From NCBI GenBank assembly GCA_964247055.1, contig OZ176054.1, forward strand, positions 9,672,001-9,736,000: a stretch of 64,000 nucleotides of DNA, written 5' to 3'. The DNA is from Paragordius varius. Taxonomy: Eukaryota > Animalia > Nematomorpha. A model generated the notes under the pieces. The model did not search any database, had not been told where the DNA came from, and worked only from the letters and a program-made list of their open reading frames with translations. The translations under genes and the position numbers were made by a program. Of the stretch, positions 8,206 through 41,039 are shown piece by piece. The stretch's first letter is position 1. The number at the start of each line of letters is the position of its first letter.

Positions 8206-9102
8206 ATGACAGACGAACCAATGAATATTACAGCTCAAAAATACAATAATAGTAGCAATCGATACAGTAACAACAATAATATCAATCGGTTACAACATAA
8301 TAAATCCAATCGACAAACAATAATAAAATCATCTATTACATGCAAACATTGCGGTTTCACACACCCACCCAACAAGTGTCCAGCCTGGAGACGATCCTGC
8401 AACAAATGCGGAAAGCTAAACCATTTTGCGAGAATGTGTGTAGCCAAAAAACAAAGACCGCACTTCAATAGGCAATTGTCGAAGGAAGTTAACGTGGGTC
8501 ATAAGGCGCTAACTCCCTTACTGATAACACTAGTAATAAACGGGTCAAAAAAAGATTTTATATATGATACCGGTTCGGACATCAGTGTAATAAACTTTGC
8601 CACATGGGAGCAAATCGGTAACAAGCTGCATCCGACACCCCCAGTAAAATCGTACAACAATACCACAGTGCCAATGATGGGGACGGCAAGTGTCAAAGTC
8701 CAAGTAAATGGTAAACAAATGGTCGGGGACATATGTGTCCTATGCAAAACGATGGGAATGGCCCCGCTAATCTGTGGACTGGACTGGATGGCGAAATTCC
8801 AGATTGAGATGCCACAGGTTAAAGTTAATTATCTTAAATTGAATGAGATTTGTGAAAATTTTAAAAATTTATTCGAAAATAAGTTAGGGTGTTATAAGGA
8901 CCCTGTAAAAATTCGCATTGCAGCGAATGCGATCCCGAAAGTATGGCCATGTCGCAGGGTGCCTTTTCCATTAAGAGAAAAGGTGGAGAAAGAGCTGACG
9001 AGGCTAGAAAAGTTAGGCATTTTAGAACCGGTTGATCCTAACACCACACCTGTGACATGGGCCACGCCTACGGTTAATGTACTTAAACCGAAGGCGAATT
9101 AA
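8206..9102 (+). CDS. Nucleocapsid (zinc knuckle) plus aspartic protease plus start of RT of the inner element
   Basis: ATG lies 15 nt after the PBS start. CKHCGFTHPPNKCPAWRRSCNKCGKLNHFARMC, protease FIYDTGSDISVI, RT start PVTWATPTVNVLKP. The frame is lost by a 1-nt deletion near 9092. Confidence 0.9.
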   Translation: MTDEPMNITAQKYNNSSNRYSNNNNINRLQHNKSNRQTIIKSSITCKHCGFTHPPNKCPAWRRSCNKCGKLNHFARMCVAKKQRPHFNRQLSKEVNVGHKALTPLLITLVINGSKKDFIYDTGSDISVINFATWEQIGNKLHPTPPVKSYNNTTVPMMGTASVKVQVNGKQMVGDICVLCKTMGMAPLICGLDWMAKFQIEMPQVKVNYLKLNEICENFKNLFENKLGCYKDPVKIRIAANAIPKVWPCRRVPFPLREKVEKELTRLEKLGILEPVDPNTTPVTWATPTVNVLKPKAN

Positions 9103-11588
9103 GAATATGTAGTAATTTTCGGGTAACGATTAATAAGTGGTTGCAAGAAGACTCCCACATAATTCCCACGTTTGATGAGTTGGTGTCGAAAATAGGTGAA
9201 GGTATCACATTCACGAAAATTGATTTAAAAGATGCTTACCTCCAGATGCCAGTGGCAGAGGAGTGTCAAGAATTGTTAACTATCTCAACACATAAGGGTT
9301 TTTTTAGATACAAACGCATGCCGTTTGGACTGGCCACGGCACATATCATCTTCCAAAGAGTGATGGAAAAAGTGCTGGTTGAAAGTCCGGGAACTTGCGT
9401 ATATTTAGATGACGTCCTAGTGACTGGTAGGACGGAAAATGAGCACATTAACAATTTAAATAACGTATTAAGTCGTCTCGATAAGGCCGGATTTAAATTA
9501 AGACAAGATAAAATAATGATAGGCGCAGAATCAGTAAACTATTTAGGATTTGAAATATCGAAAAAGGGTATAAGTCCCTGTGAAAGCAAAATTAAAGCAA
9601 TCAAGGAACTAAAAAGGCCGGTAGATAAAAAGTCGTTACGTAGCTTTTTAGGTTTTTTGACATTTCATGAACGCTTTATACCAAAATTACAAATGATAGT
9701 CGGTCCCTTACATGAATTAACTAGTAAAAATACGAGATGGTATTGGACTGAGAAACATGAAAAAAGCTGGTTAGCAGCTAAGAATTTGTTAAGCGAAAAA
9801 GTGTTTTTAACACCATATAATTCGAATAGGAAATTGATAATAGAAACTGATGCGTCAGATTTAGGATTCGGATGTATTCTAAGTCATGAAATTAATAGTG
9901 AAAGGTTACCGATAGCGTATGCCTCACAAAAATGTAGCAACGCTGAAAGGAATTATTCCACGATAGAGAAGGAATTAAAAGCAATATTATTTGCGTTAAG
10001 AAAGTTTCATAGTTTCATATATGGTAGAAAATTTACAATATTAACTGACCATTTACCCTTAGTAAAGTTAATAAATAGAGATCGAAACTTAAAAGAGATA
10101 CATAATGCTAAAATACTAAGGTGGATTAATATGATAAATGAATACGACTTTGAAATAAGTCATCAAAAAGGGGCTCAAAATAGAGCTGATTATTTATCGA
10201 GATGGCCGATTGACGAGATCGTTGCCTATGATGAAGATTATGCGGTTACCAGATATTTGAGATTTTTGAATTGTCATAACGTGCGGTTAAGCCGAGATGA
10301 AATTCGAAAAGAAACTGCATTAGATGCAGTATTACAAAAAGTAATTAAAGCGTTAAACAACCATGACTGGAGTTCTCCAGACTTAAAAAAGTTTGTAAAC
10401 CGTAAAGACGAGTTGGCATATCAATATGGCTTATTAAGTTTAAATAATCGGATTGTAATTCCGAAGCCCCTCCAAAAAGAGGTGGTGAGATACCTACACA
10501 GCGGGCATAACAACGTAGAGACCATGAAAGCGATGGCCAGATTTACGTGTTATTGGCCAGAATTAGAAAATGACCTGGTAAAAGCCAGTAGTCAATGCGA
10601 ATCGTGCCAACGTAGTAGGCCGAATGTCACTCAGAATTCCACGTATCAGTGGGATCATAATGTTGCTGTGTGGGAGCGTTTGCATATTGATATAGCCGGA
10701 CCGGTAGACGGTTTGTATTGGTTGTTGATAATTGATAGTGCCTCGAAATGGGCAGAAGGATTTATGTTGAAAAAGGTAACCGCAGCGAATATAATCCACA
10801 AATTAGAAGAAACGTTTGCAAGGTTTGGCTTTGCAAGAGAGATTGTGAGCGATAACGCTTCATATTTCAGTAACGAGTACTTTACGTCAACATTAAGTAC
10901 GTTAGGGGTGAAACATATTAAGGTTACCCCATACCACCCTAAGAGTAATGGGATGGTAGAAAGGTTAGTAGGTACAATAAAAAATAAATACAAAAGAATA
11001 AAAAACAATGGGTTATCCACCCACGAAGCGTTTAACACTAGCTTATGGGCGTATAGAAATTCTATACACTCAACAACGAAAGAAACCCCGGCCCAGTTAA
11101 TGTTTAAGCGTACCCCCCATACTCCCTTAACCTGGTTAAATAGTAGGGAGAGATTGTTAGATGCACCGGCCCCCCGACGGCAGTTTGCCATTAATGACCA
11201 GGTAATGATTAAAAATGAATTAAGTCCAGGGTGGCGCGCCGAAGAGATTACGGACCGCACAGGGTTATTTTCATACAAGGTATGGGACAAGGACCGAGAC
11301 AAAGTTGTGAGGAAACACGCTGACCAAATAGTACAACAACCACAACCACAGCCGACCACTTCCAGCAACACAAATGAGGAGGAGGTAACCACTGCCACGG
11401 ATGATGGAACAATCGCTGAAACGCAACCAAACACGATCAATGCAAGGGACGAAATCGAACCAATTACTCCGACAGCCGAAAGTCCAAATAATGATAATAC
11501 CCAGAAACCGACTATCTACTCCCCCGCTAAAACACAAGAACGGAGATACCCGACGAGAAGTCGGCAGAAACCTGCCCGCTTCCGTTAA
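9093..11588 (+). CDS. Pol: reverse transcriptase, RNase H and integrase of the inner element
   Basis: Stop-free frame GELRICSNFRVTIN...FTKIDLKDAYLQ...VYLDDVLVTG (RT), ETDASDLGFG...YSTIEKELKA (RNase H), HSGH...CESC, RLHIDIAGP, IVSDNASYF, SNGMVERLVGT (integrase). The RT-RH-IN order is that of Ty3/gypsy. Confidence 0.95.
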   Translation, partial: GELRICSNFRVTINKWLQEDSHIIPTFDELVSKIGEGITFTKIDLKDAYLQMPVAEECQELLTISTHKGFFRYKRMPFGLATAHIIFQRVMEKVLVESPGTCVYLDDVLVTGRTENEHINNLNNVLSRLDKAGFKLRQDKIMIGAESVNYLGFEISKKGISPCESKIKAIKELKRPVDKKSLRSFLGFLTFHERFIPKLQMIVGPLHELTSKNTRWYWTEKHEKSWLAAKNLLSEKVFLTPYNSNRKLIIETDASDLGFGCILSHEINSERLPIAYASQKCSNAERNYSTIEKELKAILFALRKFHSFIYGRKFTILTDHLPLVKLINRDRNLKEIHNAKILRWINMINEYDFEISHQKGAQNRADYLSRWPIDEIVAYDEDYAVTRYLRFLNCHNVRLSRDEIRKETALDAVLQKVIKALNNHDWSSPDLKKFVNRKDELAYQYGLLSLNNRIVIPKPLQKEVVRYLHSGHNNVETMKAMARFTCYWPELENDLVKASSQCESCQRSRPNVTQNSTYQWDHNVAVWERLHIDIAGPVDGLYWLLIIDSASKWAEGFMLKKVTAANIIHKLEETFARFGFAREIVSDNASYFSNEYFTSTLSTLGVKHIKVTPYHPKSNGMVERLVGTIKNKYKRIKNNGLSTHEAFNTSLWAYRNSIHSTTKETPAQLMFKRTPHTPLTWLNSRERLLDAPAPRRQFAINDQVMIKNELSPGWRAEEITDRTGLFSYKVWDKDRDKVVRKHADQIVQQPQPQPTTSSNTNEEEVTTATDDGTIAETQPNTINARDEIEPITPTAESPNNDNTQKPTIYSPAKTQERRYPTRSRQKPARFR

Positions 11589-15619: not shown

Positions 15620-18600
15620 TTAATTTTTGATGGCTCTGGGCTATAAACTACTCTATCATCAAGTGTTAATCTTGTAAAAGTTGTTAGAGTTGAATAGTGA
15701 ATTAGATAAAGCTCATATATTTACAGTTAACTTCTAGAGTCTAGAATTGGGACAACCTAAAACACGATTAAAGAAAACACTTGATAATAAATAAATTAAC
15801 ATATAGTATTTGCTCGTAAATATAACCTGAAATTTGAGTTTTCTCACCGTAGTCTGTTTTATAAGCGATTCAAAAATTTAAAATAAAAAAATGGCGCCGA
15901 AAAATTTCGAGATGCTTTTTTACAATTCTAGATTTTTCAAAGTATATTTTGGAAGCATGCGCCTAAAAAACTAAAGCATATTTTTAAATTTTGCCTAATA
16001 CCTTGAATTACTTTTCAAGATTAAAATTTGAGATCGGTCCAAAAAGATAATGAAGTGGAAATTTCACAAAAGAATTTGTATAAGGAACGGCATCTATTAA
16101 ACAGTGCACAAAATAAGGGGATAAAAAAAATTTTTATAATATAAATTTTGATCAGGGTCATGAAATAATAATTAGTTTTAAATTTATACCAGGGGTGTCC
16201 GCTTTTTTTGACTCGACCTTTTTTTTGAAAAAAAGATCGCGATCAAACAAAAATATTAGTTATCAAAAGACAAAATCAACACTTCAAATGAATTATATAC
16301 CCGCTTTACAGTGACCTATCCACATCAATTTATAATTTAATTTTAAGATTGTCCAAATACAAAAATAATTTTAATCGAAAGACGACGGGTTACTAACTAC
16401 CTTAAATTTAACTAACATGTATTTAAATATGCAATTTTGGAAGGTGGTATGGTTCTCTAATCATTTACTTTACTCTTGCATTCCTTAGATTTCAATGATT
16501 GGCATATTAATGAAGGCTCAAAAAAGCTCCTTATAACTACAAAGGAATCTTTATCAATTTTTTTAATTATTTATAATAGGGCTATTAAATTTTTAAGTTT
16601 TCAATATTTGACTTTTTAGGCAGCAACATTAATGTTGCATATTATAAAAGTCCATGTCTCTATATAGAGCGTTTTTTTTCTGACTTATTCTAATAAGTGT
16701 AAAACTTGGTTCTGTTGTATTCTTAAAAAGCTCAACTCAAAGTTTAAATAATATATTCCAGGAATATGACTGAGTAATTCAAATGCTCCAAGACATATGC
16801 ATCATAATTAAAAAATAATTAGGGTAGTTGTCGCGGTCACCTTTTTGAACCTTCCGGTTATATATATTTCATAAACTATATATATTTACAGTTATATTTT
16901 GGGGTAGTTTTAGGCACCAGCGCTATTTAAAATTCGAAAATAATACAATTTTAATCATTATTTAGCTTTTGCCCATAATTTAATTTTTTAAAAATGTAAA
17001 AAAAATAATTCTCATATCTACCTTTTTGGTCGCAATTTTATTATATTTTTGATCCTTTAACAAGAGACAAAAACATGTTTATTTTTAAAATTGAGCTAGA
17101 ATGCATATAAAATAAAATTAGATTTTGATTTTTACTGAAAAGTCATGATCGAAAAATTTTTTAAAATATATATCACTCATTATAATCTTTTTCTTTTTAT
17201 AATGTTGTAAAGGCAATTGATTTTTTCCATTATACAACAATCTTGAAGTTAATAATTTTTTCGTCAATTACACTATATAAGGCTGACATTTTGTTTTAAT
17301 TCATTGAATTTTTTTCGATAAAGATAAATTAAATATAATTCATTTTATACGCATTCTTGCCTATTTTTTTAAATACATTGTATATAAATGCGTAATCCCC
17401 TCAATTTTCCTATGTTTATTTTGTTTCAAACATGTTTTTGATTACATAGTCGCAATTTATGATATTCAGGTCTCGATATCTCTATTTCGGACACTAGATT
17501 AAAAAATTATAAAATATTTTTTCATCAATACAGGAGAACAATATTTGGTAATTTAATTAGAGCCAAATTAACTCTTAAAACAATATATTTAATTAGTAAG
17601 CCCTCCTGTACAAAACTACCCCAAAATGTAATCATCGACAACGGTAGTATTAACCAAAATTACTTGGAATAAAATATTTTTCTCGTCTAAAGGGCCGCCC
17701 ATGCCATACATATATTGACAAATTTCGGACATTGTAAAGTCGGGGTGTTCAACATGACCGAAGTGACCTCTGAAAATTTTGATTTTTTCAATGCATCATT
17801 AAATTTTTTCGAATAGCTGGCTAAAGGTATAAATGTAATAGTTATTTTTTTAATTATTATGCATATGTTTTGGAGTATTAAAACTTAAAATCAGTCATAT
17901 CCCTGTAGTATAGTATTTAAACCATAAGCGAAGCTTTTTAAGATACAATAGACGTAGGTTTTAACTTATATTTTAGAATGAGTCAGAAAAAAAGTTAAAA
18001 TATATTGTTTTAAAAGATGGGAAGAAGATTTTTTTGTTGATAATTGAGAAATTCACTTATCTAATATGCAACAGTAATATTTATATGCCTAAAAAGTCAA
18101 ATATTAACGGTCATTTTTTGTGAATCCCAAACAAAATCTAAAATATGCAAGGTTAAAGTAAAGGAATTAAAGGAACATTAACCGCCTTATGAAATTGCAT
18201 ATTTAAATACATTTTAGTTAAAAATTTAAGGTAGATAATAACCCTTCTTTTTTTATTACAATTATTATTATATATTAACAATCTTTAAATTCAATAACGA
18301 AATGATATGGATATCACTTTAATCTGTAAGGAAGTTATATAAATCATTTTAAGTATTGGTTGAGTCTTTTGATACTAATATTGGGTGACTGCGATTTTTT
18401 TTCAAAAAAAGTGGACATTCCTGTTAAGGAATATTTTTCTTCGACACGCGAATAGTACAATAATTCTTCATAGTCTACGAAACGTCCTATTATTAAATTT
18501 TTAAATAAATTTGCATATTTTTTAATTTTGCATAGCTGTATGCATTTATACTCTAGATAAGTACATCATTAAGATCATACTAAAGCTAAGGCCGCGCTTT

Positions 18601-23003: not shown

Positions 23004-24257
23004 TATATTAACAATCAACAAATTTTATTGATATTTAATTCATACTAAATTTTAGCCCGATTTCAGTGCATATCCTATATTTATGTCCATTTTTCATATG
23101 ATATATTACACTGTGCCGTCATAATGGAAATTATTAGATTGCTAAGAGCTACCAAATAATGTATCGAATAATATATGCGGTATATAATAGAAACAAAGAT
23201 ATTAATTTATCTTATTAACCAAAATCAAATGGCAATTTCATGGTTCATGGTAAATAAAATACATTCTAAAAGTATAAACTTAATTAATGATTTTACATTT
23301 TTTTTTCAAAGGGTATTTCACTCAATATATCGCCTTAAAAAAATGTCTTATATAGAAAATAAATTTTTTGAAAACAACAAAGCTAAAGTAGAGTATAATT
23401 TTTACATACCCAATATATATTATTACTTTTCTCATACATTCGACAAAGAGATCTATCGATTCAGTTTATCGATTTTGTGTATTTTTATGCAAAAGATTTG
23501 GTATCAAAAGCCAAAATGGCGCCTGAAATATATAAACTAAATAGATAGATCTTTTTTCTGCACCAATTATCTTAAAAAAAGAAATAATATATAAATGAAT
23601 GTTTTGTAATAATTATACGTTTCTTCCACTTTGGTGCAAATTATCCAACTTTTTTTATATCGGGCTTATTTTTGAAGAAGATATATTGGAGAAAATATAT
23701 ATGGTGTGATTGAAAAATTAATATAACGTATGTTAACTAGTTTTTATGATTCAAATTTGACCATGCGCGATTTATTATCTTCGATTCTAGGTTTTTTGTA
23801 TCGTCTCAAAAACTCTAAAATTCTTATTGCTAATAATTTTTGTTTAGGTCCATCCTTATAATATAATTTAATTAATTTTGGTTGTCGCGTATTCATGGAT
23901 TTAATTTTATTTGACCTGTGCGATAAAAATGCAATTTTTAATTTTGGTTAATATCATAAAATTAAAAAATATCGTTTTTTCTAGTATTTTAACCGCATTT
24001 CTTAATAATATTCTTTATTCGTAATTATTGGTTATCGAATGATATATCATTCATAAACCTTTATTTTTGCTGTACACCGTGTTATTTAAAGGCTTTAAAT
24101 AAATGAGTAAAATCTATAAAATCCAATATATAATCAATTATATTGTGTTGCGATGAAACATATTATATATAATAAATAGATTTAGTTTATTTAACTAATG
24201 AAAAAAATATGCTGTGTGGTTACAGCCAAAAACTAAAGTATTTTATCAATTGTAGAC

Positions 24258-26434
24258 CTGTGTTGGGAACATCAATTTTTATCATAATGCCATCATCAGT
24301 TTGATTTACGATGGTTGATGTAAGATTGGCATGAAAAAATTCTCTACTCTCTAAAATACTATATATTTTAAAATTTTACCATTTGGTGCCTTTATTGTCG
24401 TTTCTATTTCAAGTTATTAAAAAATAATATTACCTTCAGTTCCGGAATGCTTTACAGGGATCGTAAAAATAAAACTTGTTTCTAACATTTTACAGTCATG
24501 TAGACTTTATATTGTTAAAAATTTACTTTTTTTCGTTAATTGGGTATTAATATTTGGTAAAGAATATAAAAACAAGAGCAATATGGTATTACCATATCAT
24601 ATTCTTTAAAAAAGTAAAAAATGAAGGGGAAGGGCGTCGGAAATCTTTGGTAAAAAATGAAAATACACTAACTACTAACCCTTCACTTAAATTATGGATA
24701 TTTTGTAATGTTAAATTTTGAGAATATTATAGCAATTTATGTTAACATTTGAAATATTGTTGTTACGTATTTAGATGCGGAATTTTGTGGGTTTTTATCT
24801 TTAATAATTTAATAAATAGTAAAATGGGTATTTTATTATTTATGATTAATAATTAAATTCAATATTTACTATTTATCAACATGATAAATACCTGTATTAA
24901 TCGATATTGGTATCATTTTATATAGTTGTTATTAGTAATTAAAATACAGCTTATATATATATATTAAAATTTAAGGAGATTTTGGATTGTTTTTGTTTAT
25001 GTTATTCATTGTCAATTTTTATGTATTGACATTTTAATCAGGTAAAAATGCGGTTTGTAAATTTAGTCAAATTTATTTTTTTTTGTTTTTTTATTTAACA
25101 TTGTTAATTGTAATTAATTACTATTTATTTAATTTTAAAAAATACAGGTAAAAATGGCGTTTTTTAACAAATTTCAAATTTAATTTTTTTTGTATCATTG
25201 TTATTTGTTATTAATTATCAAATATTTTCGACATTTAAAAAACATGTGAAAATTGCGGTTTTTAATAAAATTAATAAATTTTTAATGATTTGTTCAACCT
25301 TGCTAATTTATTCAAATGATAGTAATTTTTACCTGTATATATCAATGTATCAAAAATATATAGTATATAATAAATTAGCGAGGTTTAACAAAAAAAATCT
25401 TACTAATTTATTAAAAACCGCAATTTTTACCTGTTTTTTAAATGTCCAAAATATTTATTAATTATAACAATGATACAAAAAATGTTAAATTTGAAAAACT
25501 GCCATTTTCACCTGTATTTATTAAAATTTCCAAAATATGGAGTAATTAATTACAATTAACAATGATACAAAAAATAAATTTGAAATTTATTAAAAACCGC
25601 AATTTTTACCTGTATTTATTAAAATGACCAAATAAATTAATTACAATTAACGATGCAAATCCTAAAAATAAAAACTCAATTTTTATTAAATTTATTAAAA
25701 ACTGCAATTTTTACCTGTTATTATTAAACACAATATGTAATTAATTACAATTAACGATGTTAAATAAAAAACAAAAAAAAATTAAATTTGACTAAATTTA
25801 AAAACCGCAATTTTTACCTGATTAAAATTTCAATACATAAAAATTCATAATGAAATAACATAAAAACAAAAACAATCCAAAATCTCCTTAAATTTTAATA
25901 TATATATATATATATATATAAGCTGTATTTTAATTACTAATAACAACTATATAAAATAATACCAATATCGATTAAAACAGGTATTTATAATGTTGAAAAA
26001 TAGTAATTATTGAATTTAATTATGAATCATAAATAATAAAATACCCATTTTACTATTTATTAAATTATTAAAGATAAAAACCCACAAAATTCCGCATCTA
26101 AATACGTAACAACAATATTTCAAATGTTAACATAAATTGCTATAATATTCTCAAAATTTAACATTACAAAATATCCATAATTTAAGTGAAGGGTTAGTAG
26201 TTAGTGTATCATTTTTTACCAAAGATTTCCGACGCCCTTCCCCTTCATTTTTTACTTTTTTAAAGAATATGATATGGTAATACCATATTGCTCTTGTTTT
26301 TATATTCTTTACCAAATATTAATACCCAATTAACGAAAAAAAGTAAATTTTTAACAATATAAAGTCTACATGACTGTATATACAAACTTTACCATTGTTC
26401 TTATCTATATAAAATATTTCGGTTGTTATATATA

Positions 26435-26474
<40 letters not shown>

Positions 26475-29400
26475 TAAATATATAATAAAAACGAACATGG
26501 CTAATTTTGTGTAATAAATATCTTAGGATTATTCAACAACCAAATGTTTGATAAAAAATACTTCAAAAAGATTTACACTAATATTCATCAATGATTGCCG
26601 AAAAGACAATGTTCAAAAAATCAAGATGTGCTTTTTATTGTTGTTTATAACTATTTTTATGGGTATTAACCATATTTAAACGTAACAAATAAAATAACCA
26701 TGTTTTATTTGTGCAAAAGCATTTTTTACACGGTAAAATTGAAAATGTTATGTGTATTATCGAATCAAGACGGATTCGAAGATATATATGGATGAATAAC
26801 ACAATAGGTCGATTAAAAATGTGTGAACCGCATATGGGGCTTATCGCGCAGTCTGTTTCAATGGTAACCATAAATTATTTTAAAATTAAAAGTTTGCGTT
26901 TTTGTAACAATTAACACTTGGATACAACACATTCATTTCAGTCCTTCGATTCAAATTGGGTTAGTTGGATACCCCAGGCCTGTTTAAAACTAAATTCTTC
27001 AAATAATATAGAAGGAATCGAAACCATGGCAAAATTTTGCACTTATATAACATTAAAAAACCGATATATATAAAATATTTTATTCAAATATACTTGATAT
27101 TACTTATTTTAAGCTAAGACCGAAAGGTAAAAATTCTGTCAACGTGACATGTGTGCGGTAAAATTGAAAAATAATACAAGATAAACCGCTTTTTCTGTTT
27201 CTATCAATGTTAGATGTAATTTAAATAAAAAATAAGCTTTAATTCTACCCTTAAAATTAATGAAAGACGATATTTTGCAAAAATTTTGTAAAATAAAAAT
27301 TGCGGCGAAGTAGTTTGACATGGAACTTTTTTTTCAAAACAAAATTTCATTTAGATATTTTGGCATGTTTATATAATTTTTATTAGGATAGAAGCATAAA
27401 TTAAATTGGGACCGTTTCATTCAGTAGTTTTTTAAAAGTCTTAACTCAAATTTAGACTGGGGTATTTAGGTACCCCAAATTGAATCGAAGTGTTAATATC
27501 GATATCAACTTTGATAGAAATAAAATCCTTCCGTAAATACCTTCAGTGTTGGTTATTATCCCATGATTGGTATCTAAAATTTTTAGAAAATACAATTACC
27601 GCATGGATAATATTAAAATAAATTTTTATCAAAATAACAATATTTTTCGTGAGAGATGAAGGCAATCCGATACATGTAGTTAACGGTATTAATTATAAAA
27701 AAATCAACTTAGTTGCTACTCTTAATTATATATTATAAAATTAACACTGAATATTTTTTATGTATATGTTTTTTATCACAATATAATGTGAAAAACATGC
27801 ATTCAAATTGGTCGGTTACCAACTGTTATAGCTTTTTTCGTAAATCTTATTAACCCCTTATAAATAAAACACCAACTAATATTAATTATTCACCTTTACC
27901 GAGTTTGAACATACCTGAAAAAGTATATCCTCTCGAAGCTATAGTACTTCCAATCATCCCTGTTAAAATATATTATTTTGATACCTCCAATGGTTGAGCC
28001 CAATATCCCTCCAAAAACAATTCCTGTTTATTTGTAATGATTTATATCGATTTTATAAAGCATTACCTTTCCCAACTGTTATTAATACCGATATTAGAAC
28101 ATAATATAGTAACTATTATTATAGAGACAAAATGTAATAACTTAAAGACATATATTTTTTAAAGTAACAGCTTATTTAAATCTTTATATTTTGGCTAAAG
28201 GGTAGCGAAATTTGGAATAGAGGTTCAAAGTTAAGCACTCATAATTCAATATTTTACACTATTATCATATGTTAATTAGTAAAAATCATATAAAAAAATA
28301 TTAGTCTGTTAGTTTTTACGTTTTGTCTTCATTATGATTATATACATATTTGAAATTTTAATACGCTACCGATTGCCGTTTTGCCTAAAATGATAAATAA
28401 CAAATTAAGTATTGATGAACAGTAGACAATATTTAAATAGAATACCGCCAATAGCTGTTTGTATAGCCCTTTTTAGTGTGTTCGGGATATGGGGCGTCGA
28501 TTTGTATCCTGTATAGTTTATTAAGATACATATTTAATATTTACATATTGAACTTGATTTTTCCGGTTATCGTTTGATGTATATATATAGCACCCTTATA
28601 GTTGGCCACTTAGCATTATTTACTGCCATGTTTAGTGGTAAACTATACTTGCCTCATGCCATCCAGAAAAATTTGGTAATAGAAAAAAGATATATTTGAT
28701 ATCAAAAGATTTAAAAATAACTGAAATACTACTATTTGACCTATGGGAGCACGTTTACTTCAAAAAGTGTAACCATTTAGTTAACTTTTTTCTTATTTAA
28801 TATTTAAGATGAGTATATAATAAATCACCATTTTAATTATTTATTGATTATTAATCAGCTGTGAGCCGCCCTTTTTTATTTTTGGCTTTTTACTTGGATA
28901 CAACGCATTCATTTCGGCATCCGATCCAAATTAGGGTCTTTGGGATCCAGGCCTATTCAAAATCGAATATTCTAAATTTATGGAACAAATTGGAACCATT
29001 GCAAAAGTTTGCGCTTATTTAATATTGATGCATCGTAAAAAAAAGAATCTTTTAAAAATACTTAATAGCACTTATTTTATGGATATACCTTAAGGTTAAA
29101 ATATAGTCGACATGACATGTGTAAATTAGCTAAATGTAAAATTATGCATTAACCCTTTTTTTGTTTATATCTGTTTATATCAATTTTAGATGTTTTTCCG
29201 TAATAATTTAGTTAATAATTATTCAATAAAATGCGCGAAATCACCATTATAATATTTTTTTATATTTTTATTATTTTCGTTTTATTTAAAGTATATTACA
29301 TTTTCCTTTTCATAATTCTTATCCCTCATTGGAGTTGTAATAATGCGTATTTTATTTTTTCATTTTTAATTATTAATATGTTTATTATATGAATTTGTTT

Positions 29401-32400
29401 ATGAGGGTTAAAAAGGTAAATTTCTTGTGCATTCGGGAGATTGGATATCTTGGAAACGGCGCTAAGACGTTAGAGGGTAACTATAAAATATAATACCATT
29501 TGCACACTAAGAGTGTCATTAAACACTTCAAGTTGGTCCTTGAACATTTCAGGTGGGTCCTACATTTTCTTCTAACATTGTGTTATAACTTTAATCAATC
29601 AAATCATTTATTGTTTATCTATTTTATCATTTTTAACGTATTTTCTTTATTTATAAACTTTTAAATCCATCACCGTATATCTTTATACTTTCTTAAAAAA
29701 TATTTTTTATATTATTAAAATATATAAATTTTTTGGGTTGTTAATCTTAATTTTTTGTTAAAAACATTTATGTAATTATCATAAACTAAGAAAATAGGTA
29801 AAAAAATAATAAAATAAAAATACATCTAAAAATCATGGTTATCAAATTTAAAAATTTTATAGACCAACTTGAAGTGTTCAGGGACACTCTTAGTGCAAAT
29901 ATGATATTTTATTCAGGTTCTTAGGATGGTTACAGTGGGGTCGCCATGATGTTGTGTCCAAGATTCGCCAATCAAGGAATTGAGTTTAAACGTGCTTAAA
30001 ATTATAAGTATTGACTTATTGTTAGATAAGAGGGTTTTTACCATCTTATCGTTTATGCTCCCCAGATAGGATTGAGTAAACTACAGAAAGATAAATTTTA
30101 TGATTTGTTAGAGGAAGAAATGAATTCATTAATGAAAGACAGAAAAATCATATTTTTTGGCAATTTCAATGGGCATGTAGGACAAAATAGAAGATGTTTT
30201 AAGTCTTGGCATGGCGGAAAAGGTTACGGGGTTAAAAATAACAAAGGGACTAGTTTAAGATTTGCTCAACCATATAACTTAGCTATAACAAATACCTTCT
30301 TTACTAATAGGGATAGCCACTTAATTACCTTGAAAGTGAAAATGAGAAGTCACAAATCAATTATATCCTTGTATTGCGAAAGTCTTTAAAGTACTATGTG
30401 GACTGCAAAGTCATACCTAACCTGTAGATTAGTACACAACATATTTTAATTATGTGTAAGTATATGACAGGTATACCAAATGTTATTAAAAAGCGTAAGC
30501 TTATAGTGCCAAAGGTAATTAAATGGGACTTAAAAAACAGTAAAGAAAGATTTGTAGAAACCGTACGCATACCAGACAGGAACATTGTTGCAGAAATTGT
30601 CTCAGGTGACTAAATTAGAGAAGCGGGAATTAAGGTGTGTGGAATGAAAGGTGATAGAAATCAGTTGTACGAGGCATGGCTGAAAGACAAAAGTGGATTT
30701 TGAAATAGCGAGAGAAAAGTAAAGCTTTTAAAATGTGTTGTTTTACCCACCAAGCAGAAGACAAGGAATAATATAAAAGGATTAATAAGGAACTTAAAAG
30801 GCTTGTGAGGATGGTCAAAAAAGAGAAAACGGAATTACTATATGAGGAGTTTAATCGTGAGAAAGGTCCAAACAAAGTTTTTTAAATTGATCGACTAAGA
30901 CACAGAAGAAAGCTGCCCCCTTAAGCGACCGCTATTAAGACACAACCGGTAAATTACTCGTTGCGTTGAGGAAGAGAATTCGAAGAGGTGGACAGAACGG
31001 ACCTCGAATTGGGCGTCAGTAAAACGAATTTACCCGACACCAGATTATGTAACTGCGCCTATTGAAAGTATTTTTAAAGAAGTCCGGGTTGGTTTAGAAG
31101 AGTGTCTCTAAATAAAGCTGTAGATCCAAATGATATTAACATAAACTATTGGAAAATAAAGTCAGAGAAAGTTGATTTTTAAACGAATATTTTTATAGTA
31201 GTTGCTACAGGTATCTAATGAAAGGATAGTTTAACTGTTCTTATATTTAAGGGCAACGGAGATATTGATTGTAACAAATACAGATGGATAAGATGGATGT
31301 CGCTTACAATGAGTTATTGGGGAAAATACTAGAGAAACGGGTAAGAAAAATGGTTAGAGAGGGTAATCAATTTGATTTAATTCCGGGAATGTCCGCGATC
31401 GATCCTATTCACGCATGATGGCGAATTGAAAAGCATATGGAAATAAATGTAAAAGGAGTTGGGTGGTATTTTTCTCCACATTGAAAAGGGGTTTGAGAGG
31501 ATACAACGGAGTTATGGTGGAGTTTAGAATCAAAAAACGTTCCTAAAAATTACATAAAAATTCAAAAAGCATGTACGGCTCTCATCATACCAAAGTTGCA
31601 ACAAACCAGGGAGTGTCAGATCCTATTGAAATAAACCCAGGCGTCTAACGAAATTTCAAAAAAGTGCGGTAATATGATGGCCGATAATTTCTTTATGCAG
31701 GCGACCTAATAGTGCTGTCAGACTAGTTGCATGAATTAAAAGAATTGGTGAACAAATGGATTGATGTGTTACGACGGGGTGGTTTAAAAGTTAATAAAAA
31801 AAGGAACTTATAAATTTTGGTGAAAAAATGATAAATGGAATTGGAAGAAGGTTGGGTATTAAAAGGTCAGAAAAATGCAAATATTTAGGCGATTATAGCA
31901 GCAGATGGATCTTTAACGCATGATATAAATCTAAGAATTCGAATCGTTGGGCAAATAAAAAAAATCTCAAATGTTTTGTGTAATAAAAAAATTGACCTAA
32001 AAGTCAAGTGAAGATTTAAGTGCTGTTGTATGTCCAACATGGATGTACAACTCACAGACATCGGTAATAAAATCAGAAGAGAGGCACAAGTTACGGAAAT
32101 GAGAATGCTTTGATTGATGTGCGGTGTAACGAGGAAAGACAACATGAGTAATGCACTGTGTGCAAAAATTTTTTAACAAAATATTTCATGAGAGAACTTA
32201 TGACGAGGAATTCATTTGCCGTAAAAAATTTTATTTGTTTACGACCTAGTTTTTGAAATATTGAGAGAAAATGGAAATCGGGCAAAAGGTGAAAATTAAG
32301 GATAATTAAGGATAATTAAAAAAATAATGATAAAATTTGAGATATTATGGTTTAGTATCATTTTAGGAGATATTTTCAAAATATAAATAGCCTAAAATCA

Positions 32401-35400
32401 TATAGTTAGGGTTTCTATAAAATCTCAGCTCAAAAGATAGCGTTTTTCTTTGAACACAGTTAAAGACAAAAAATTTTTTATGAAACTATATTAAAATATT
32501 TTTTTTCATTATCTACTAGCTAAATTAAAATCTTAACATTCATATTTTATTCAGTAAAAAAACTTATATATCAAATAAAACCAAAAATATTGTATTTTAT
32601 TTTTTCATTTTTTTGCCATCTGGTTTATGAGTGTATAAAAAATTTATACTGTTTTATTTTGGAATCTTACATGAGTGCGAATTATAAAGTATATAATTTA
32701 TGCAAAGTAAATATAAAAGTAATGGAATATCAACCAACAATTCTTACAAATTCCCGTAACAAACTTGTTTAACACAAGTTAATATTTCTACTGGGATATG
32801 TACGGATTTTAAATTAATTTCCACTAATTGTAATTTTATTTTGTAATGTGAAGTTCCAAAATAGACAGTAAATTTTTATACCGTTATAAACCAGAAAAAA
32901 AAATGAAAAAATACAAAACAATATTTTTTAGTTTTATTTTGATAGAGAAGTTTTTTACTGAATAAAATATGAATGATAAGATTTTAATAGTGAGGTTAGC
33001 TAGTAAATAATAGAAAAAAATTAGTTAAATATAGTTTCATATAAAATATTTTGTCTTTTGAGTGTGTTAAAGGAAAAACGCCATATTTTAAGATTTTATA
33101 GAAACCCTAAATATACGATTTTAGGCTATTTATATATTGAAAATATCTACTAGATAAAACCATAATTCAAGTTTTTTCATTTTTATAATTATCCTTAATT
33201 TTCACTTTTTGCCCGATTTCGATTTTCTCTTTTATTATAAAAACTAGGTCGGCAACAAATAAAATTTTTTGTGTCAAATAAATTCGCTGGTCAAAAGCTA
33301 TCTCATGAAAAAAAAATTTGTTAAAAAAATTAAACCTCTTTTTTGCACACTGTGATGTATAAATTATTAAAAGAAGTACAGAAAGACCAATAAGCCAAAA
33401 AAGATGTTAGATTGTCTTTGCATTTGGACACGTAGAAAGAAGAGATAATAACTAACAGATTCTTTAATTAATAAGATAAAGTTTTTAATATATAGATTAA
33501 AAAACTATAAATATTAATGTCTGTAATTCTCTTCATGTGTTATAGTTAAGATATTCAAAATTAAGATGAAAACTCCTATTCAATCCGATACGATATAAAA
33601 TGTTATAATACAATCGATTTTTTATAATTATAATACACAAAAAATTTAAAATAATAATGGTTATTCCATTTTAGATTAATAATTTTTATTATGCAATCAA
33701 TATTAACAATATATGTCCTTTTGGGGTAATTTTATATTCCAGCGATTTAACTTTAAATATCCTAAAAAGTTTTAAGGTATTAGGCCGAATTTAATCTTTC
33801 TTTAGCCTTTTAGGCGCATAAATTTTTTTTATCAAAAATAAAATTGTAAAAAAACTCAAACTATTTGCCGCCATTTTTTTAAATTTGAAATCCCAAATGT
33901 AATAGGCAAATAAATGTATATTATGGTTGCAGATAATTAACTTTATTAAGCTTTCAGGTTGCAATTTACTAGGAAAACCTCATATTTATTGATTTTAAAA
34001 GCAGTATAATTTAATCGTGTTTTCGAGCTAAAATTTTATCTAGGAATCACAACACTGTAAAAAATATGGGTTTAATCTAATACAAGCGAGCAAATTTGAT
34101 AATCAAATTTTAATTAAAATTTTAAAACAGTAGGTTATTTAATATTGAGCTCGGGAAATAAACCCCAATATGTCATCGTGACAAAAGTGAAATGTTAAAT
34201 AATAATTTAAACAATAAATTTTATTATTTAAAAATAAAAGCACATGGGAACCACTTAATTTGAAGGTGGAACCGGAACCAAACTGGTTTATGGACGGTTC
34301 CAAAACCGGCCTGGCGCCTAACAATATAGAAATAGAAACGGGTTTGTTCTTGCAAACCTGGGGCTCTCTTAGAAAGCGGGATCGAAACCCCGGGTCCTGA
34401 TGAAATCTCAAAAACCCAGTTCCTCTTTGGGAAGTTCTGGTTCCAAGCCTGAAGGAGTTCATGAAATTTATCATACTGATATTATATGAATATGAAAATA
34501 ATACTATATAAAAAATATATTTTTTGAAAGAATATGATTTACTGTAAAATTACATTCTAATTTATTTCATACTATTAGAAGTTTACAAATCCCTAGAAAT
34601 AAATGGTTTATGTGAACTCTCACCTGAAGCAATGACAGAATTTATTAAAATATATTTTTTTCAGCCGATTTTTACTTTTATTGCTTTATATTAATATATC
34701 CAAGCTAATAATTGTATAAATTAGGTATTGCTATTTTTAGAAATGTACTATATCCGATATCAATAATAATAATAATAATAATATTGCATTTAGGACATAT
34801 ACTAGCTCTTACCTGTATTTCCTGATTTGGAAGTATCGTCAAGTTCTTTAAAAAAATAGATTAAAATTAATTTTATTGTTTCAATAGCCATTTTATATTT
34901 GTATTTTTTATTTACTTGGTGGTAAATTTTTCACATTTGTATCCACAGATTTTTCTGCGTGATCTACAGATAAATACAAAAATATTATTAAATTAAAATG
35001 AAATATATTTTTTTTTTATTATTTCATTCAAAATTAGCATTTTTTATAATCAAACGATTATTAAAAACAATTTTTGGGTTCTGACATCAATGTTGACCCA
35101 TTTTTTCATAAATGTTTTCTTTTGAATGAATTTGGATACAAAATCATATAACATTTATGTAGTATCATAAGCGGTATTTCCTGGTTTAAATCTCGGCTTC
35201 AAAAATTTTAATAGAATAAAATTAATTTTCTTAAAATAGCCATTTCATATTTCTATTCATTTACTCAATGGTAGTTTTTTCACATTTGTATCCACAGATT
35301 TTTCTGCTTGATCTACAAAAGAAAAATATAACAATATAATTAAATTATAATAAAATATATTGTTTTATTACTATTTCAATCATAATGACATTTAATTGGT

Positions 35401-38400
35401 ATTTTTTTATAATCAAACGATTATTAAAAACGATTTTTGGGTTCTGATAATGTTGACCCATTTTTTGGTATTTTGTTTATCTTTTGACTGAAAATCGATA
35501 CATATATATAAATTATGTAGTATCATAAGCGGTATTTCCGTGTTTGAATCTTGGCTTCAAAATTTTATCAGAATAAAATTAATTTTTAATAGCTATTTTT
35601 TCACATTTGTATCCACAGATTTTTCTGCTTGTTCTACATAAGATTGAAATCACAATATAATTAAATTAAATTAAATATATTTTTTATTACTATGTCCTTC
35701 ATAATTGACATTACGCATCTTTTCATAATCAAATGATTATTTAAAATTTTTGGGTTCTGACTCAAGGTTGACCCATTTTTTAGAATCTAATTTGACTGTA
35801 AAGGCGATACAAAATTATATAAATTATGTAGAATCATTAGCTGTATTTCCGGCTTTGAATGTATCTTGTGGCTTTGAAATATTTAATAATAGAGTAAAAC
35901 TTGAAACAGACAAAACAGAAAGAAACACAAATATTTTAATAATAAATTTGATTTTTTTCTGTTAAGAATGGGTGTCTTTAAAAATTTTTGTATTTTTTTT
36001 GTGTGTAAAATAATTTTTACTGTAAATAAATATTTTATTCGCAAAATAGGCATTTAATATGGGTATTTATAGTTTACTCGTTTTCTGTGGGTTTTTCAGC
36101 TCATTTATATTGGAAGATTTTTGTGATTGATCTATAACATACATATATTAATAAAATTTTTTTTTGTCATGTCTTTAACAAAAAAACCTTCTTCTTTTGG
36201 TACGTCTTCGTTGGGTTGATTCTCCGAAAGTTTGACTAAAGTTTGAGAAAATTATATTCGTGAAAACAAAGAATATATAAATTGGTATAGAAAATTTTTT
36301 ATTCTGAGTCTGAAATTAAATTAATCTAACATAATATGTAAAAGTGTATTATGAATTGGCGTGGAAAAATAGCATAAAAATATTACATGGAGGATCCGAT
36401 TAAATGCGTAGGTAATGAAAAAAAGGTTTTTTTGAAGCAAAAACATCATAACATAAAATTTTTTTTGGCGCAATATTTTACGAAATTACTCCGTTTCCGG
36501 TCAGGTTCTTCGTCTGAGGAAGAATCATCAGGATTCAAAGTGTCGCGATTCCTATTTGATGGCCCTGCACATTTAATAATAAATTGATTTATACCGGGCT
36601 CTTCTTCATCAATGAATATCGGGTTATTCGCATCTAAGTTTAGTTCACTTTCGGTTAGTGTATCAGGCATATTATTTAAATCTAAGAATATCAAATAAAT
36701 TAGCGTAGAGATTTCGGCTATTGTTAAACACAATATCCAAAATTATCAAACATTCATACCGGATTGAATTCCTTCAACCTCTAAATATTAAAAGTTAGAG
36801 TTATTTTTAAAATATCTTTTCCATGTTATCAAATTTTTCAATGACCCTAGTAAAAATTTGCAACAGATATAATTGACCCGCTCGGATATTTTTAATTATT
36901 AGTATTGTACAAATTAAGCTTGAAAAAGGTTAATAAATTGTCGACATACAAATAAGATATTCCTTAAAGATCCAATTTAAATTTTTGTGTCAAAGATTGT
37001 GTTTTACTTTTTTAATTGTAGGACAACCTTAAAAATTATTTACTAATCCTCATTTAATAACAATACAACAAAAACATAATATGTAGAAAAACTCCTGAAA
37101 CTGATGTTATATTTAATTGATTATTTGGTAACACATTATAATATTAATATGTTTCAGCTTTAATTACCTGAATCAAAATCAGATCCTTCACCTAGAAAAT
37201 TTTATCAATTGGTTTACTTGAGACCCAATCATCCATATCTGCTGTAAAATTAGCAAATATTAATACCACCAGGGTTCTCTAAATTCATAATTTCTAAAAT
37301 ATAAAAATATATATAGAATTATATGTATATCAGAGTGTATCAAAATCGGGGTCCGCTTTGTGTATAAGTTTTAGAAAGAAAAAATTAAAACGCTAAATAT
37401 AGAAAATAACGCAATTATATCAAGTGTGTGCAACACAAAAAAACTTTACAGCTGTTTAGATAATTTTTAGTTTTTTCATTTATTTTGAGCCTAATTACCT
37501 TGTGAATATCGTAAATTTGTGATTAAAACTTTTTATTTTTTATTAACATTTTTTTCGAGCACTATCGAAAATGCATGTCGTTAATCCCTGTCTAAATCAT
37601 TTAGAATTTTTTGGTTTAATTTGTTTGTAAAAATATATATTTGTCATATAATTAAAGTATAAACACAGAATAAACTTGATAAAATATGTTTAAATTTAAT
37701 TTTTCCTCTCATTTTAAATTATAAAAAAGCCTCAGAATAAAATAAGTGTATTAGGTTACCTTATAGGAGAGTTTTGTTTAATATGAATTTATTAAAAACT
37801 CGTCTAATTTACCAACTTGCACAGCAAAATTTAATTCCTTGTTTATTTTACCCGTAAACAACGTATATTACTACATTTTGACATAAAAAACCAATGTTTT
37901 TAATGATATTTTATAGTTTTTTCTTGTTATTAGCTTAACAAAAGTCGATTATTAAAATGGGATAACTAAATAATATTCATGAATCTTGATCGAAGCAAAA
38001 TGTTAGTTCAGCAAAGCACCGAAGCATCTTGAAGCTATTTCGGGTTTGTTTGTCAAAATTATGAAAATTTTAAAATATTTAAATCAACTTACAAAGCTAA
38101 AAAACATATGGATATTTAATGCTTAAGTGTGATACATGTAAGGATTATAAACCCGAAAACATTTATTTTAACTTTAAAAACGTGTATAAAAGCTATGTTG
38201 AGAGATTATTGAACGGCATGGAAAATCTTACGCTCATGATATATACAGGGTAATAAAAAAAGCCAGATATAAATTATTCATATGATTTCGTTTTAAATGC
38301 CTAAATGGATATCGATTTGAATAAAAAAATAGTAATATTTTTGCGAACAGACACTAACGGACATTAACTAGCTGCATTTTATAACTTGAAATAATTTAAT

Positions 38401-39959
38401 TTAATAAAATTCATTTTTTATCTAAAATAATTATTAGTTTAATGAAATCATTAAGAGACTGTATTAATAGAATTAATTTGGTTAATGTAAAATTTGCAAA
38501 TAATAACTTGGTATTGATTGTCTTGATCTAATTATATATTATGATAAAGCATTCGATGTTGTAAAATGAATAATTTGTTTTCTAATTGTTATGCATAAAT
38601 CTTTGATATAAGTAGGGTTAATATACATATGCTATGAAAGTTATAATATTTTTGTTAATATAGTTTTTTTATTCTAAAAGCTAATTATTTAACTCAAATG
38701 GTGCATATACCAGATGCAGTGATAATTTTTTACCTGTTTTGGTAAACATGTAATTTTCAAAGAAAAGTAATTAATTGAAAAAAATACATCGAGTCTCTCA
38801 GGTGTATGAATGCCATGCAAAAAACTGAATGTAATATACGAAAAACATTCATCAAGCTATTTTTCAACGTCTTCAAAATAATTAAAAAGCTGCTATGCGG
38901 CCCCATTGACGCGAAATTTGAATATTCCGATTGCCCCAGAAGAGGAGAGTTCAGTGGAGACGGAAAAATTTCCAATCGAAGCACTTTCAAGATGTCTTTC
39001 ACTGATTTTGCTGTGTAAAGCGGAACATCATCATGTACAATACTTGGTGGTTTCCAGTTGATGATAAATAAAATTGATTCTTTTTTAGGGATAATGTTTG
39101 GTGTATCGGTGTCACCAGGTTTAATTTCAGAATACAAAATATAGCTCTGGTCTCACCTGGTACAGAGCACGGTTGTCTTGCAAAGGTGATTTGGCAATGG
39201 AGTGATGAATTGGGTTGAAGAGGCGAAAGCTCCAATTGTTTCGCTTTGCCATTACAAAATAAAGTCATTTCTCTGATCCATTCAAATTTAATACAAAATA
39301 ATTTTTTTTCATGCATTGAAGTTGGGTTTCACACAAGTTATTTGACGATTTAAATTTGACATTGCATTTGATATCATTTTTGCTCGTAAACTATTATCGT
39401 TTTTTGTGACCATATAATTTGCCAATTTTTGTGAGGTTTGGGTGTCAATTAGAGGATGTGTGGTTTCCCAGAGCGCCCATTTTACATATCATAACTTATA
39501 ATATTTCGAACCATTCCCATGTGTTAATTGATACAGCATGTAATGTTTCTGATAACTTTCTAATTGTAATATCAATTCATGTCACAAATGCTCTTTTCGA
39601 AATTTGACGTAACTAGTCAATGATAAAATAAAACTCTAATTTTCGGTGAATCAATTTGTGTGTGTTGGTCGTAATGTCAAATTCAAAAGGGGTCTGTAAT
39701 AAATTAATCGTGAGCCTACTTTTGCTTTAGTTTCTCTTTTAATCGAGGACTTATAACTACACCTGATATTACGTTTAAAATAAAGTTATATTTTTATAAT
39801 TTTTACCCCAATTTACTGGCGGGTTTATTAAAACATCATCAATGTCAGTATTGAGGGCTGCGAGTACCTGCCAACCAGGATTTTCATCTATTAATGCTTG
39901 GAAATTTTCTATAAACATCCCTAAATTTTCTTCATTTTCAAGTTCGACATTCTCAATTT
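24258..39959 (-). CDS. Uncharacterised micro-exon gene: at least 25 symmetric phase-1 exons, about 380 aa; ends not located
   Basis: Exons, all AG/GT bounded, multiples of 3 and stop-free: 39959-39807, 37293-37267, 37241-37218, 37191-37168, 36780-36760, 36681-36595, 36564-36490, 36235-36188, 36131-36078, 35312-35265, 34963-34916, 34845-34813, 34448-34416, 34396-34358, 34317-34273, 28508-28446, 28384-28370, 28075-28067, 28023-27985, 27959-27915, 27573-27541, 26404-26393, 24481-24434, 24403-24380, 24350-24258. No homolog recognised; membership of all clusters in one transcript is inferred. Confidence 0.7.
24493..26376. mobile_element. 1.9-kb foldback element (Tc1/mariner-type ends)
   Basis: TA|CAGTCATGTAGAC...GTCTACATGACTG|TA. 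The arms are reverse complements almost to a centre near 25320-25370 and carry tandem aaaaccgcaatttttacctg subrepeats. No ORF. Confidence 0.92.
26917..27490. mobile_element. MITE family A copy (another starts at ~28895)
   Basis: Arms ttcgattcaaattggg...atacccc and ggggtat...ccccaaattgaatcgaa are inverted; homologous to 1741-1825. Confidence 0.65.
29496..29904. mobile_element. MITE family C (TA|CCATTTGCAC termini); second copy at 41461-42034
   Basis: Inverted ends gagtgtc...aacacttcaa...gtccttgaac / gttcaaggac...gacactct are shared by both copies. Confidence 0.8.
29950..33450 (+). pseudogene. RTE-clade LINE relic (AP endonuclease plus RT), interrupted by a DNA element
   Basis: Endonuclease motifs YAPQ.GLS..QKDKFY, FGNFNGHVG and LAITNTFFTNRDSHLIT (30072-30389), RT remnants, and the C-terminal CGVTRKD and FGHVERR motifs on either side of the 32154-33354 insertion. 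Confidence 0.85.
32154..33354. mobile_element. 1.2-kb palindromic non-autonomous DNA transposon, CMC (CACTA/Chapaev)-like
   Basis: Termini CACTGTGTGCAAAA...TTTTGCACACTGTG, 3-bp TSD ATG (32151-32153 and 33355-33357), long inverted arms. Confidence 0.8.
34813..36235 (-). repeat. Tandem amplification of a ~330-350-bp three-exon cassette
   Basis: Blocks tgtatccacagatttttctgc (34938, 35288, 35608), gttgacccatttt (35092, 35453, 35767) and gcggtatttcc/ctgtatttcc (34812, 35171, 35529, 35841) recur in order. Confidence 0.85.
38757..39775 (-). pseudogene. Intronless, frameshifted relic resembling a baculovirus-F/errantivirus env ectodomain
   Basis: Fragments in order: VISPRLKEKLK, LLQTPFEFD, YMLYQL, then FEWIREMTLFCNGKAKQLELSPLQPNSSLH, followed by a hydrophobic tail. 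The assignment is from remembered motif patterns only. Confidence 0.35.
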
Positions 39960-41039
39960 CTAAACATTAATATAGTATGAATAAAATATGAATAAAACCT
40001 ATTTTTTTAAGAATTTTAGCTTTTTAATATTTAAGAAATAAAATGACGTTTTCATTGTCTTTTAAAGTCAATTTATAATCAAACGGTAAGAAAATCACAG
40101 TATTAATAATCAATGAACAGAAACTGAAAAATTATAAACATGTTTTGGCCTCTAGTCCAAGAAATGTTACACATTTTCCTATCATAACAATTCTGGTTTC
40201 TAAAAATTGTCAAAAAGCTATCTGGTTTACAGTTTTTTCTCAAATAATATTGTTGTCACTGTTTGTGTTATTAGATAGCTTAAATATTTAGAATTATTTT
40301 GAATATATAAGTTAATTATTATTATTGAATAAGTCAGCTTAAATTGAATGAATTTATTAGGTAAATGTTCCACTATAATCTTTGTCGAACGTATATTTAT
40401 GGTAAAAATCTAAAAAATTATACTTCCAATATTTAGATATTGTAAACATTGAAAAAGATTCCTCATTTTATTTTATCGCGTAACATTTGTTAATAATAAT
40501 TTTAAAAATAATAAAGATACAGTTATTTTGAAATTATTGCATTACATAATTAGTTGTTTATTCATAATTCGTTAATTTTTAATTTATCGCGTAAATAATA
40601 TAATATATGGTTGATAATAATAATACAAAAGATTATTTAATTGGTAAATAAATGTTTTACCCAACTGATTAATAGCTTCTTCGGGATCCGGAGGATTAAA
40701 AAAATCATCTAAAATTTTTATGAACACATAAAATTATCATTATAATTAATTTAATACCTAGAGCTTATCAAAAAAAATATTAACTAAAATTTTGAGCCAA
40801 ATTTAAAAATATAAAAAATAAATTATATAATCATTTTGTGAATTCGGCCAATATTTTTCTGAATTAAATGCCTATCTAATCATGTTGACAAATTAATTTA
40901 ATTATGAGCATAAAGATATAAAGTTACATTACAGAAAATACTTGTTATATTAAACACTGTTTGTTTCAGTTATTCGATGATTCTTATTTAGATTTATGCA
41001 AGTATAAAACTGAAAAAAATAGGATTACATTGCCAGTTT

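Follow-up and report, generated by a model that had tools for sequence, protein, structure and literature searches.

What happens when a transposon lands in an intron of only 25 nt, and does it matter that the transposon is a palindrome? The question is raised by a locus in the genome of Paragordius varius, where a micro-exon gene on the minus strand carries an insertion of nearly 1.9 kb. A first-pass annotation of this DNA suggested that the two halves of the element fold together in the pre-mRNA, so that the donor and acceptor return to roughly their former spacing. In what follows, the window is the whole 64,000-nt stretch that was analyzed (C5:9672001-9736000), and positions without a prefix refer to it.

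The element and its empty site

Read along the minus strand, the sequence runs from the 12-nt exon ATAAGAACAATG through GTAAAGTTTGTATA, TA, the element (26376-24493), a second TA and AAATGTTAG to a 48-nt exon. The acceptor TATAG lies directly 5' of the 12-nt exon. The first-pass annotation had placed the insertion between the exons at 26404-26393 and 24481-24434, and this is what the sequence contains. It had also stated that excision of 24493-26376 together with one TA leaves 25 nt. Direct reading confirms that a GT..AG interval of this length remains, and the paralog empty sites described below agree. The parts of the element, none of which is assigned to a strand, are as follows:

24493..26376, foldback (palindromic) Tc1/mariner-type element, 1,884 bp, non-coding, with ends CAGTCATG...CATGACTG
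24491..24492, left copy of the TA target-site duplication (a single TA in the paralogs)
26377..26378, right copy of the TA target-site duplication (direct reading, paralog alignment and family flanks)
24493..24660, left terminal inverted repeat, a perfect arm (170 nt counting the TA) common to transposase-bearing relatives
26209..26376, right terminal inverted repeat (inverted-repeat search and comparison with the longer family copies L048 and L057)
24663..25003, inner left arm, 341 nt, 93% complementary to 25869-26209
25869..26209, inner right arm, pairing with 24663-25003
25569..25820, core array of ~105-nt tandem units (period 105, 2.5 copies), with inverted counterparts at ~25044-25283

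In an inverted-repeat search, the outer arms with their TA (24491-24660 and 26209-26378; 170 nt) are 100% complementary, and tandem- and inverted-repeat searches show that the ~105-nt units of the core run in both orientations. Mirror-image matches cover 100% of the element (coverage 1.00), so the earlier description of it as almost wholly self-complementary was accurate. It is the sole large palindrome in the 64-kb window, and its 24-nt terminus occurs there twice (vs. zero expected). The longest ORF that overlaps it is 87 aa, and an Rfam search over 24000-28200 returned no matches.

The features of the host gene, all on the minus strand, are as follows:

24482..26392, intron, now 1,911 nt (the ancestral 25 nt, the element and one TA; reading and alignment)
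26393..26404, 12-nt micro-exon, kept with its acceptor in five of five paralogs
24434..24481, 48-nt exon (reading, paralog alignment and frame)
24380..24403, 24-nt exon, with introns of 30 nt and 29 nt on its sides
24220..24350, terminal exon, with the stop codon TAA at 24222-24220
27541..27573, 33-nt upstream exon between two long ancestral introns, with a 3-nt deletion in one paralog
26405..27540, 1,136-nt intron, non-palindromic, common to all paralogs
27574..27914, 341-nt intron, non-palindromic, common to all paralogs

The gene, an orphan with micro-exons, belongs to a colinear tandem array of five paralogs (C5 ~9696000-9917000), each ~15 kb long and 38-58 kb apart, of which this copy occupies window positions 24200-40800. 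The other four lie on the same contig (~C5:9752700, 9801600, 9839700 and 9897700), and in every one of them the two flanks of the element are contiguous, with a single TA and an uninterrupted GT..AG interval of 24-25 nt. These four uninterrupted copies establish the empty site and the intron alike as genuine. The alignment shows that all five paralogs share the 12-nt exon, the 24-25-nt interval, the 48-nt exon, a 24-31-nt intron, the 24-nt exon, a 24-29-nt intron and the terminal exon, and that similarity collapses ~20 nt upstream of the 12-nt exon and past the stop codon.

That the interval is an intron follows from several observations. Its length varies (24 nt in one paralog, otherwise 25 nt), and keeping it introduces an in-frame stop in five of five paralogs. 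A single open frame runs across the last eight exons (9, 39, 45, 33, 12, 48, 24 and 131 nt), and the two exon indels between paralogs are of 3 nt each; indels in the introns show no such constraint on length. Each exon that was checked has a length divisible by three, and the introns fall into a tiny class (23-43 nt) and a long one (>300 nt). The small introns of this copy measure 43, 25, 25, 30 and 29 nt, the third being the ancestral length of the interrupted one. An unsupervised intron-length spectrum over 144 kb gave no peak and is uninformative on whether 25 nt is the modal size. We are highly confident of the identity of the element (a TA-duplicating foldback Tc1/mariner) and of the ancestral empty site. 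Judged from these comparisons, the first-pass gene model holds at the terminal-exon end of the gene.

When searched against 1.84 billion representatives, the terminal-exon peptide gave weak matches to repetitive bacterial proteins, which we take as chance. In the absence of a credible homolog for this exon, the gene family looks lineage-specific. An internal repeat of ~360 nt of the micro-exon gene lies at 34800-35960, and a Pfam search of the larger minus-strand ORFs in the gene span (38757-39137 and 34139-34474) returned no matches.

A palindromic Tc1/mariner family

A search of the 110.6-Mb assembly, allowing at most two mismatches to the 24-nt terminus, found 64 + 66 matches (~130), vs. 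none for a reversed control. A sample of 38 copies was assembled from the element studied here and 37 others taken with their flanks. TA is present on both sides in 37 of the 38, and mirror coverage is at least 79% in 27 of them. The non-coding copies range from 859 to 2,358 bp (0.86-2.4 kb). Full-length identity to the nearest copy (L052) is 98.0%, in one fixed orientation; thus, the arm mismatches were already there in the source copy and cannot date the insertion. Two longer, non-palindromic copies, L048 (2,941 bp) and L057 (2,769 bp), have the same termini, and their homology to the element is confined to the outer 170-204 bp (92-96% identity). Both carry decayed pieces of DDE_3, the Tc1-like transposase domain, at 32.7 bits (above the cut-off) and 24.8 bits, respectively. 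The TA duplication, the CAGT ends and these DDE_3 pieces between shared termini place the family in Tc1/mariner. On the same sequence comparisons, the element is a non-autonomous foldback derivative of that family, and its palindromic form is characteristic of the family and did not arise at 24493-26376. It is an ordinary young insertion of a type common in the genome.

Drosophila FB and Galileo elements have longer target duplications and belong to another superfamily. The element resembles them (PMC4168063) in having arms that make up approximately the whole element, internal tandem repeats and copies of variable length, and it differs from them in superfamily, in its TA duplication and in having Tc1-like DDE_3 relatives. 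Stowaway-like MITEs and Bari variants are described as non-autonomous Tc1/mariner elements with long inverted repeats (PMC3814204, PMC4877112). Like Tc1/mariner MITEs, the element has a TA duplication, CAGT-type termini, no coding capacity and tens of copies, and its ends are shared with transposase-bearing copies. Unlike a typical MITE it is much longer (1.9 kb), and its interior, a palindrome in its own right, has no relationship to the transposase-bearing copies.

Several other observations were made during the genome search. Intact Tc1-like DDE_3 ORFs of 341 aa are present in the genome, many as inverted pairs, for example, at C2:4376215(-)/4377838(+), C9:1406528(-)/1408151(+) and C11:1383523(-)/1386669(+). 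The paired ORFs are spaced 1.2-3.1 kb apart, and these are apparently palindromic elements with two transposase copies. An intact transposase between family termini was found at none of the 100 termini listed of the ~130. A Pfam scan of the ORFs in a 5.3-kb copy (L068) returned no matches. One foldback-family copy (L037, C2:3274564-3277339) lies within a retrotransposon protease coding region (DTGA motif). A 5.5-kb palindrome ~1 Mb away (L071), considered as a possible member of the family, was ruled out, given that it lacks the family terminus.

The termini invite comparison with another kind of sequence. Paramecium internal eliminated sequences (IESs) have TA boundaries and TAYAG-type (Tc1-like) ends, a consensus that the TACAG ends of the element fit. 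Given also that its ends read TA-CAGTCA and that the genome is AT-rich with 25-nt introns, the element could be imagined as a germline-limited, ciliate-IES-like sequence that is removed at the DNA level, and the likeness to Paramecium indeed extends to a TA-bounded element, Tc1-like TAYAG ends and a 25-nt-intron genome. However, CAGT is the usual Tc1 terminus, the contigs, at 10-15 Mb, are as large as chromosomes, the genome contains Tc1-like ORFs and a CAAP1-domain match, and the genetic code is standard, as established by an 815-aa pol ORF without TAA or TAG; unlike in Paramecium, nuclear dimorphism is not indicated. We rejected the IES reading, to which we give next to no credence, in view of the ORFs in standard code and of content typical of an animal. 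The pol ORF itself, which encodes reverse transcriptase, RNase H and integrase with no stop codon, is part of an LTR-retrotransposon coding region at 8152-11588 on the plus strand, along with a 316-aa ORF that has a zinc knuckle and an aspartyl protease. Elsewhere in the window, a ~3-kb element (54624-57646) with 93-nt inverted repeats that are 81% complementary is a candidate ordinary TIR transposon.

Proposed splicing of the enlarged intron

The 1,911-nt intron retains its GTAAAG donor and the last 11 nt before the acceptor (TAAAATGTTAG). It is because the TA was duplicated that these 11 nt, including the likely branch A, were kept, and the donor was kept too. We think it on balance probable that the locus is explained by a Tc1/mariner foldback insertion, ordinary splicing at the same GT and AG, and a hairpin that is a by-product. 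The first part of this is shown by the sequence: a non-autonomous foldback element inserted by cut-and-paste at a TA midway along a spliceosomal intron of 25 nt, in a single member of the five-paralog array and after its members had diverged. The 1,911-nt intron would most likely be removed by the ordinary spliceosome at the unchanged GT and AG, for which the long non-palindromic introns of the same gene would be the precedent, and the ~940-bp hairpin would simply arise as a consequence. The hairpin may be of some benefit, masking cryptic sites inside the intron and keeping its two ends close, and would not be required. Taken by itself, the outcome that the enlarged intron is still removed at its original GT and AG is close to an even call, leaning slightly to the doubtful side.

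The precedent comes from the neighboring introns. In all paralogs the 33-nt exon sits between two long introns, and the presence of 341-nt and 1,136-nt non-palindromic introns in this same gene implies that long introns need no hairpin here. If the gene family is expressed, then long introns without hairpins would be spliced in it.

The predicted fold of the intron is extreme in one respect only. The minimum free energy of the 1,911-nt RNA is predicted to be -1051 kcal/mol, vs. about -307 for shuffles, and the predicted structure is one hairpin of ~940 bp with 90% of bases paired. Its stem pairs positions 15 to 1902 of the intron, leaving 14 bases unpaired at the donor end and 9 at the acceptor end. 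The claim that the hairpin restores a spacing of ~25 nt is thus upheld to the extent that the predicted stem leaves 14 + 9 nt, but shuffled introns give an equal path (an exterior-loop path of 24 observed vs. a mean of 23.0 in the shuffled predictions). In these models, end proximity is a general property of predicted long-RNA folds, and it is only in stability that this intron is exceptional.

There is precedent for intron structure of this general kind. In yeast, zipper stems and downstream stems shorten the effective distances between splicing signals, and modeling indicates that a formed stem needs at least 20 nt to the branch site (PMC12350175). The helix predicted here is likewise internal to the intron and would shorten the effective signal distance; this is so by prediction only (23 free nt), and the shuffles do the same. 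Whereas yeast zipper stems are short and evolved, the predicted stem is that of a 940-bp transposon hairpin that abuts the likely branch site. It starts 14 nt from the donor, an acceptable distance, and ends 9 nt from the acceptor, only ~2 nt off a candidate branch A at -8. This A is present in this intron and missing in some tiny introns of the gene.

It is important to ask whether other copies of the family occur in tiny introns. We reconstructed the empty site of each of the 37 other copies and looked there for a GTA[AT]..[ACT]AG span of 20-32 nt. Such a span was found at three of the 37, compared with 23% of random TA sites, and a bare GT..AG pattern that is this frequent at random sites proves nothing on its own. 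On inspection, one of the three fits lies in a retrotransposon protease ORF and two are without coding flanks. There is thus no convincing tiny-intron site among the 37 other family copies (one in 38 overall), and no sign of enrichment. The first-pass annotation had spoken of an abundance of foldback elements in these introns; this did not hold up, given a single large palindrome in 64 kb and no other copy, of 37, in a tiny intron.

A second sample comes from the array itself. Across the five loci there are 18 paralog-specific insertions of at least 250 nt, with mirror coverage of at most 0.11 for 15 of them and of 0.27 and 0.36 for two. A second near-fully palindromic insertion among the 18 (1.19 kb, coverage 0.90) is in a long intron, and the element at 24493-26376 is the only one in a tiny intron (n = 1). 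This copy of the gene also holds, in another long intron, a 3.6-kb window-specific cluster of non-palindromic repeats.

Some of these insertions can be described further. The 1.19-kb palindrome lies in paralog P3 (L027+L031; gene-strand 16786-17978) at a (TA)n microsatellite. Part of the 3.6-kb cluster is a 2.2-kb dispersed, non-palindromic repeat (29950-32200) with at least 40 genome copies (~79% identical); it is absent in paralogs P1 and P3, and a Pfam search of its ORFs returned no matches. A window-specific repeat of ~587 bp (26911-27497) is inserted in the 1,136-nt intron that immediately precedes the 12-nt exon, and an 87% identical copy of this repeat occurs elsewhere in the P3 paralog locus.

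These results bear on the possibility that the hairpin, by restoring ~25-nt spacing for a tiny-intron splicing machinery, makes the insertion tolerable and so biases which transposons survive in tiny introns. The single predicted hairpin with its 14 + 9 free bases is what such a process would leave, and of the 18 paralog-specific insertions the sole tiny-intron one is a foldback element, although one case carries no statistical weight. The possibility seems to us quite unlikely, considering that the same gene holds long non-palindromic introns, that none of the 37 other copies is in a convincing tiny intron, that the exterior path is equal in shuffled introns, and that the stem is ~2 nt from the likely branch A rather than the at least 20 nt of the yeast modeling (PMC12350175). 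As far as the models go, hairpin rescue of splicing is plausible; nothing that we checked demands a hairpin, and in that sense it is not needed. Overall, the first-pass interpretation is partly supported. In its broadest form, the idea is that near-complete self-complementarity lets DNA transposons occupy 25-nt introns, either because the hairpin re-creates tiny-intron geometry or because it summons SOS-type excision (see below) that leaves a spliceable remnant, and we consider this improbable.

Tolerance, damage, and related pathways

There are two points that may be set against uneventful splicing. The 12-nt exon, now between two long introns, may be hard to recognize without help, and a ~940-bp hairpin could equally trigger Dicer- or ADAR-type processing and lower expression. 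The insertion may in fact damage this gene copy: the intron could be retained, giving a premature stop, the 12-nt exon could be skipped in frame, or the hairpin could trigger RNA silencing. In that case the insertion would survive only on account of its youth and the four remaining paralogs. We regard this as possible but unlikely. It would fit a young insertion (98% to the nearest copy vs. 14-17% divergence between paralogs) in one of five tandem gene copies, in which retention of the interval leads to a stop and the checked exons, as multiples of 3 nt, can be skipped with the frame kept. However, the splice sites and frame of the last eight exons are intact, a point tempered by the recent date of the insertion, which would have left too little time for decay. 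In any case, the youth of the insertion relative to paralog divergence, together with the four sister copies, explains its tolerance without any special mechanism.

A different route to tolerance is offered by SOS splicing, in which pairing of inverted repeats in the mRNA leads to spliceosome-independent excision by AKAP17A, CAAP1 and RTCB (PMC12779559). The process is conserved from C. elegans to human, is imprecise, and acts on exonic or UTR insertions; intronic Tc1 copies are not its substrates in C. elegans (PMC12779559). Here, it would cut the element from the transcript, and the near-25-nt remainder would then be spliced normally. Like known substrates, the element is of Tc1 type with inverted repeats that are predicted to pair, and its host gene is buffered; the trigger, paired transposon inverted repeats, is known to act on Tc1-type elements (PMC12779559). 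In addition, the genome has a CAAP1-domain match above the Pfam cut-off (C3:9724963-9725082, minus strand, 38.1 bits), so the pathway may exist in this organism, although nothing ties it to 24493-26376. Unlike those substrates, the element is intronic and thus outside the part that enters mature mRNA, and intronic Tc1 copies are not SOS-spliced in C. elegans, where SOS junctions are also imprecise (PMC12779559). We therefore consider excision by this route very improbable.

Ordinary splicing of a young foldback insertion remains our preferred reading. If self-complementarity were what admits transposons to tiny introns, selection for hairpin-permitted insertion would go some way to accounting for the many palindromic transposon families in this genome. 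More generally, the array is a natural experiment, in that a hairpin-forming insert has expanded the 25-nt intron of one gene copy 76-fold and four sisters keep the original. It is thus well suited to show how tiny-intron splicing responds to an intron of this kind, and what part, if any, RNA structure or an SOS-type pathway plays in that response.
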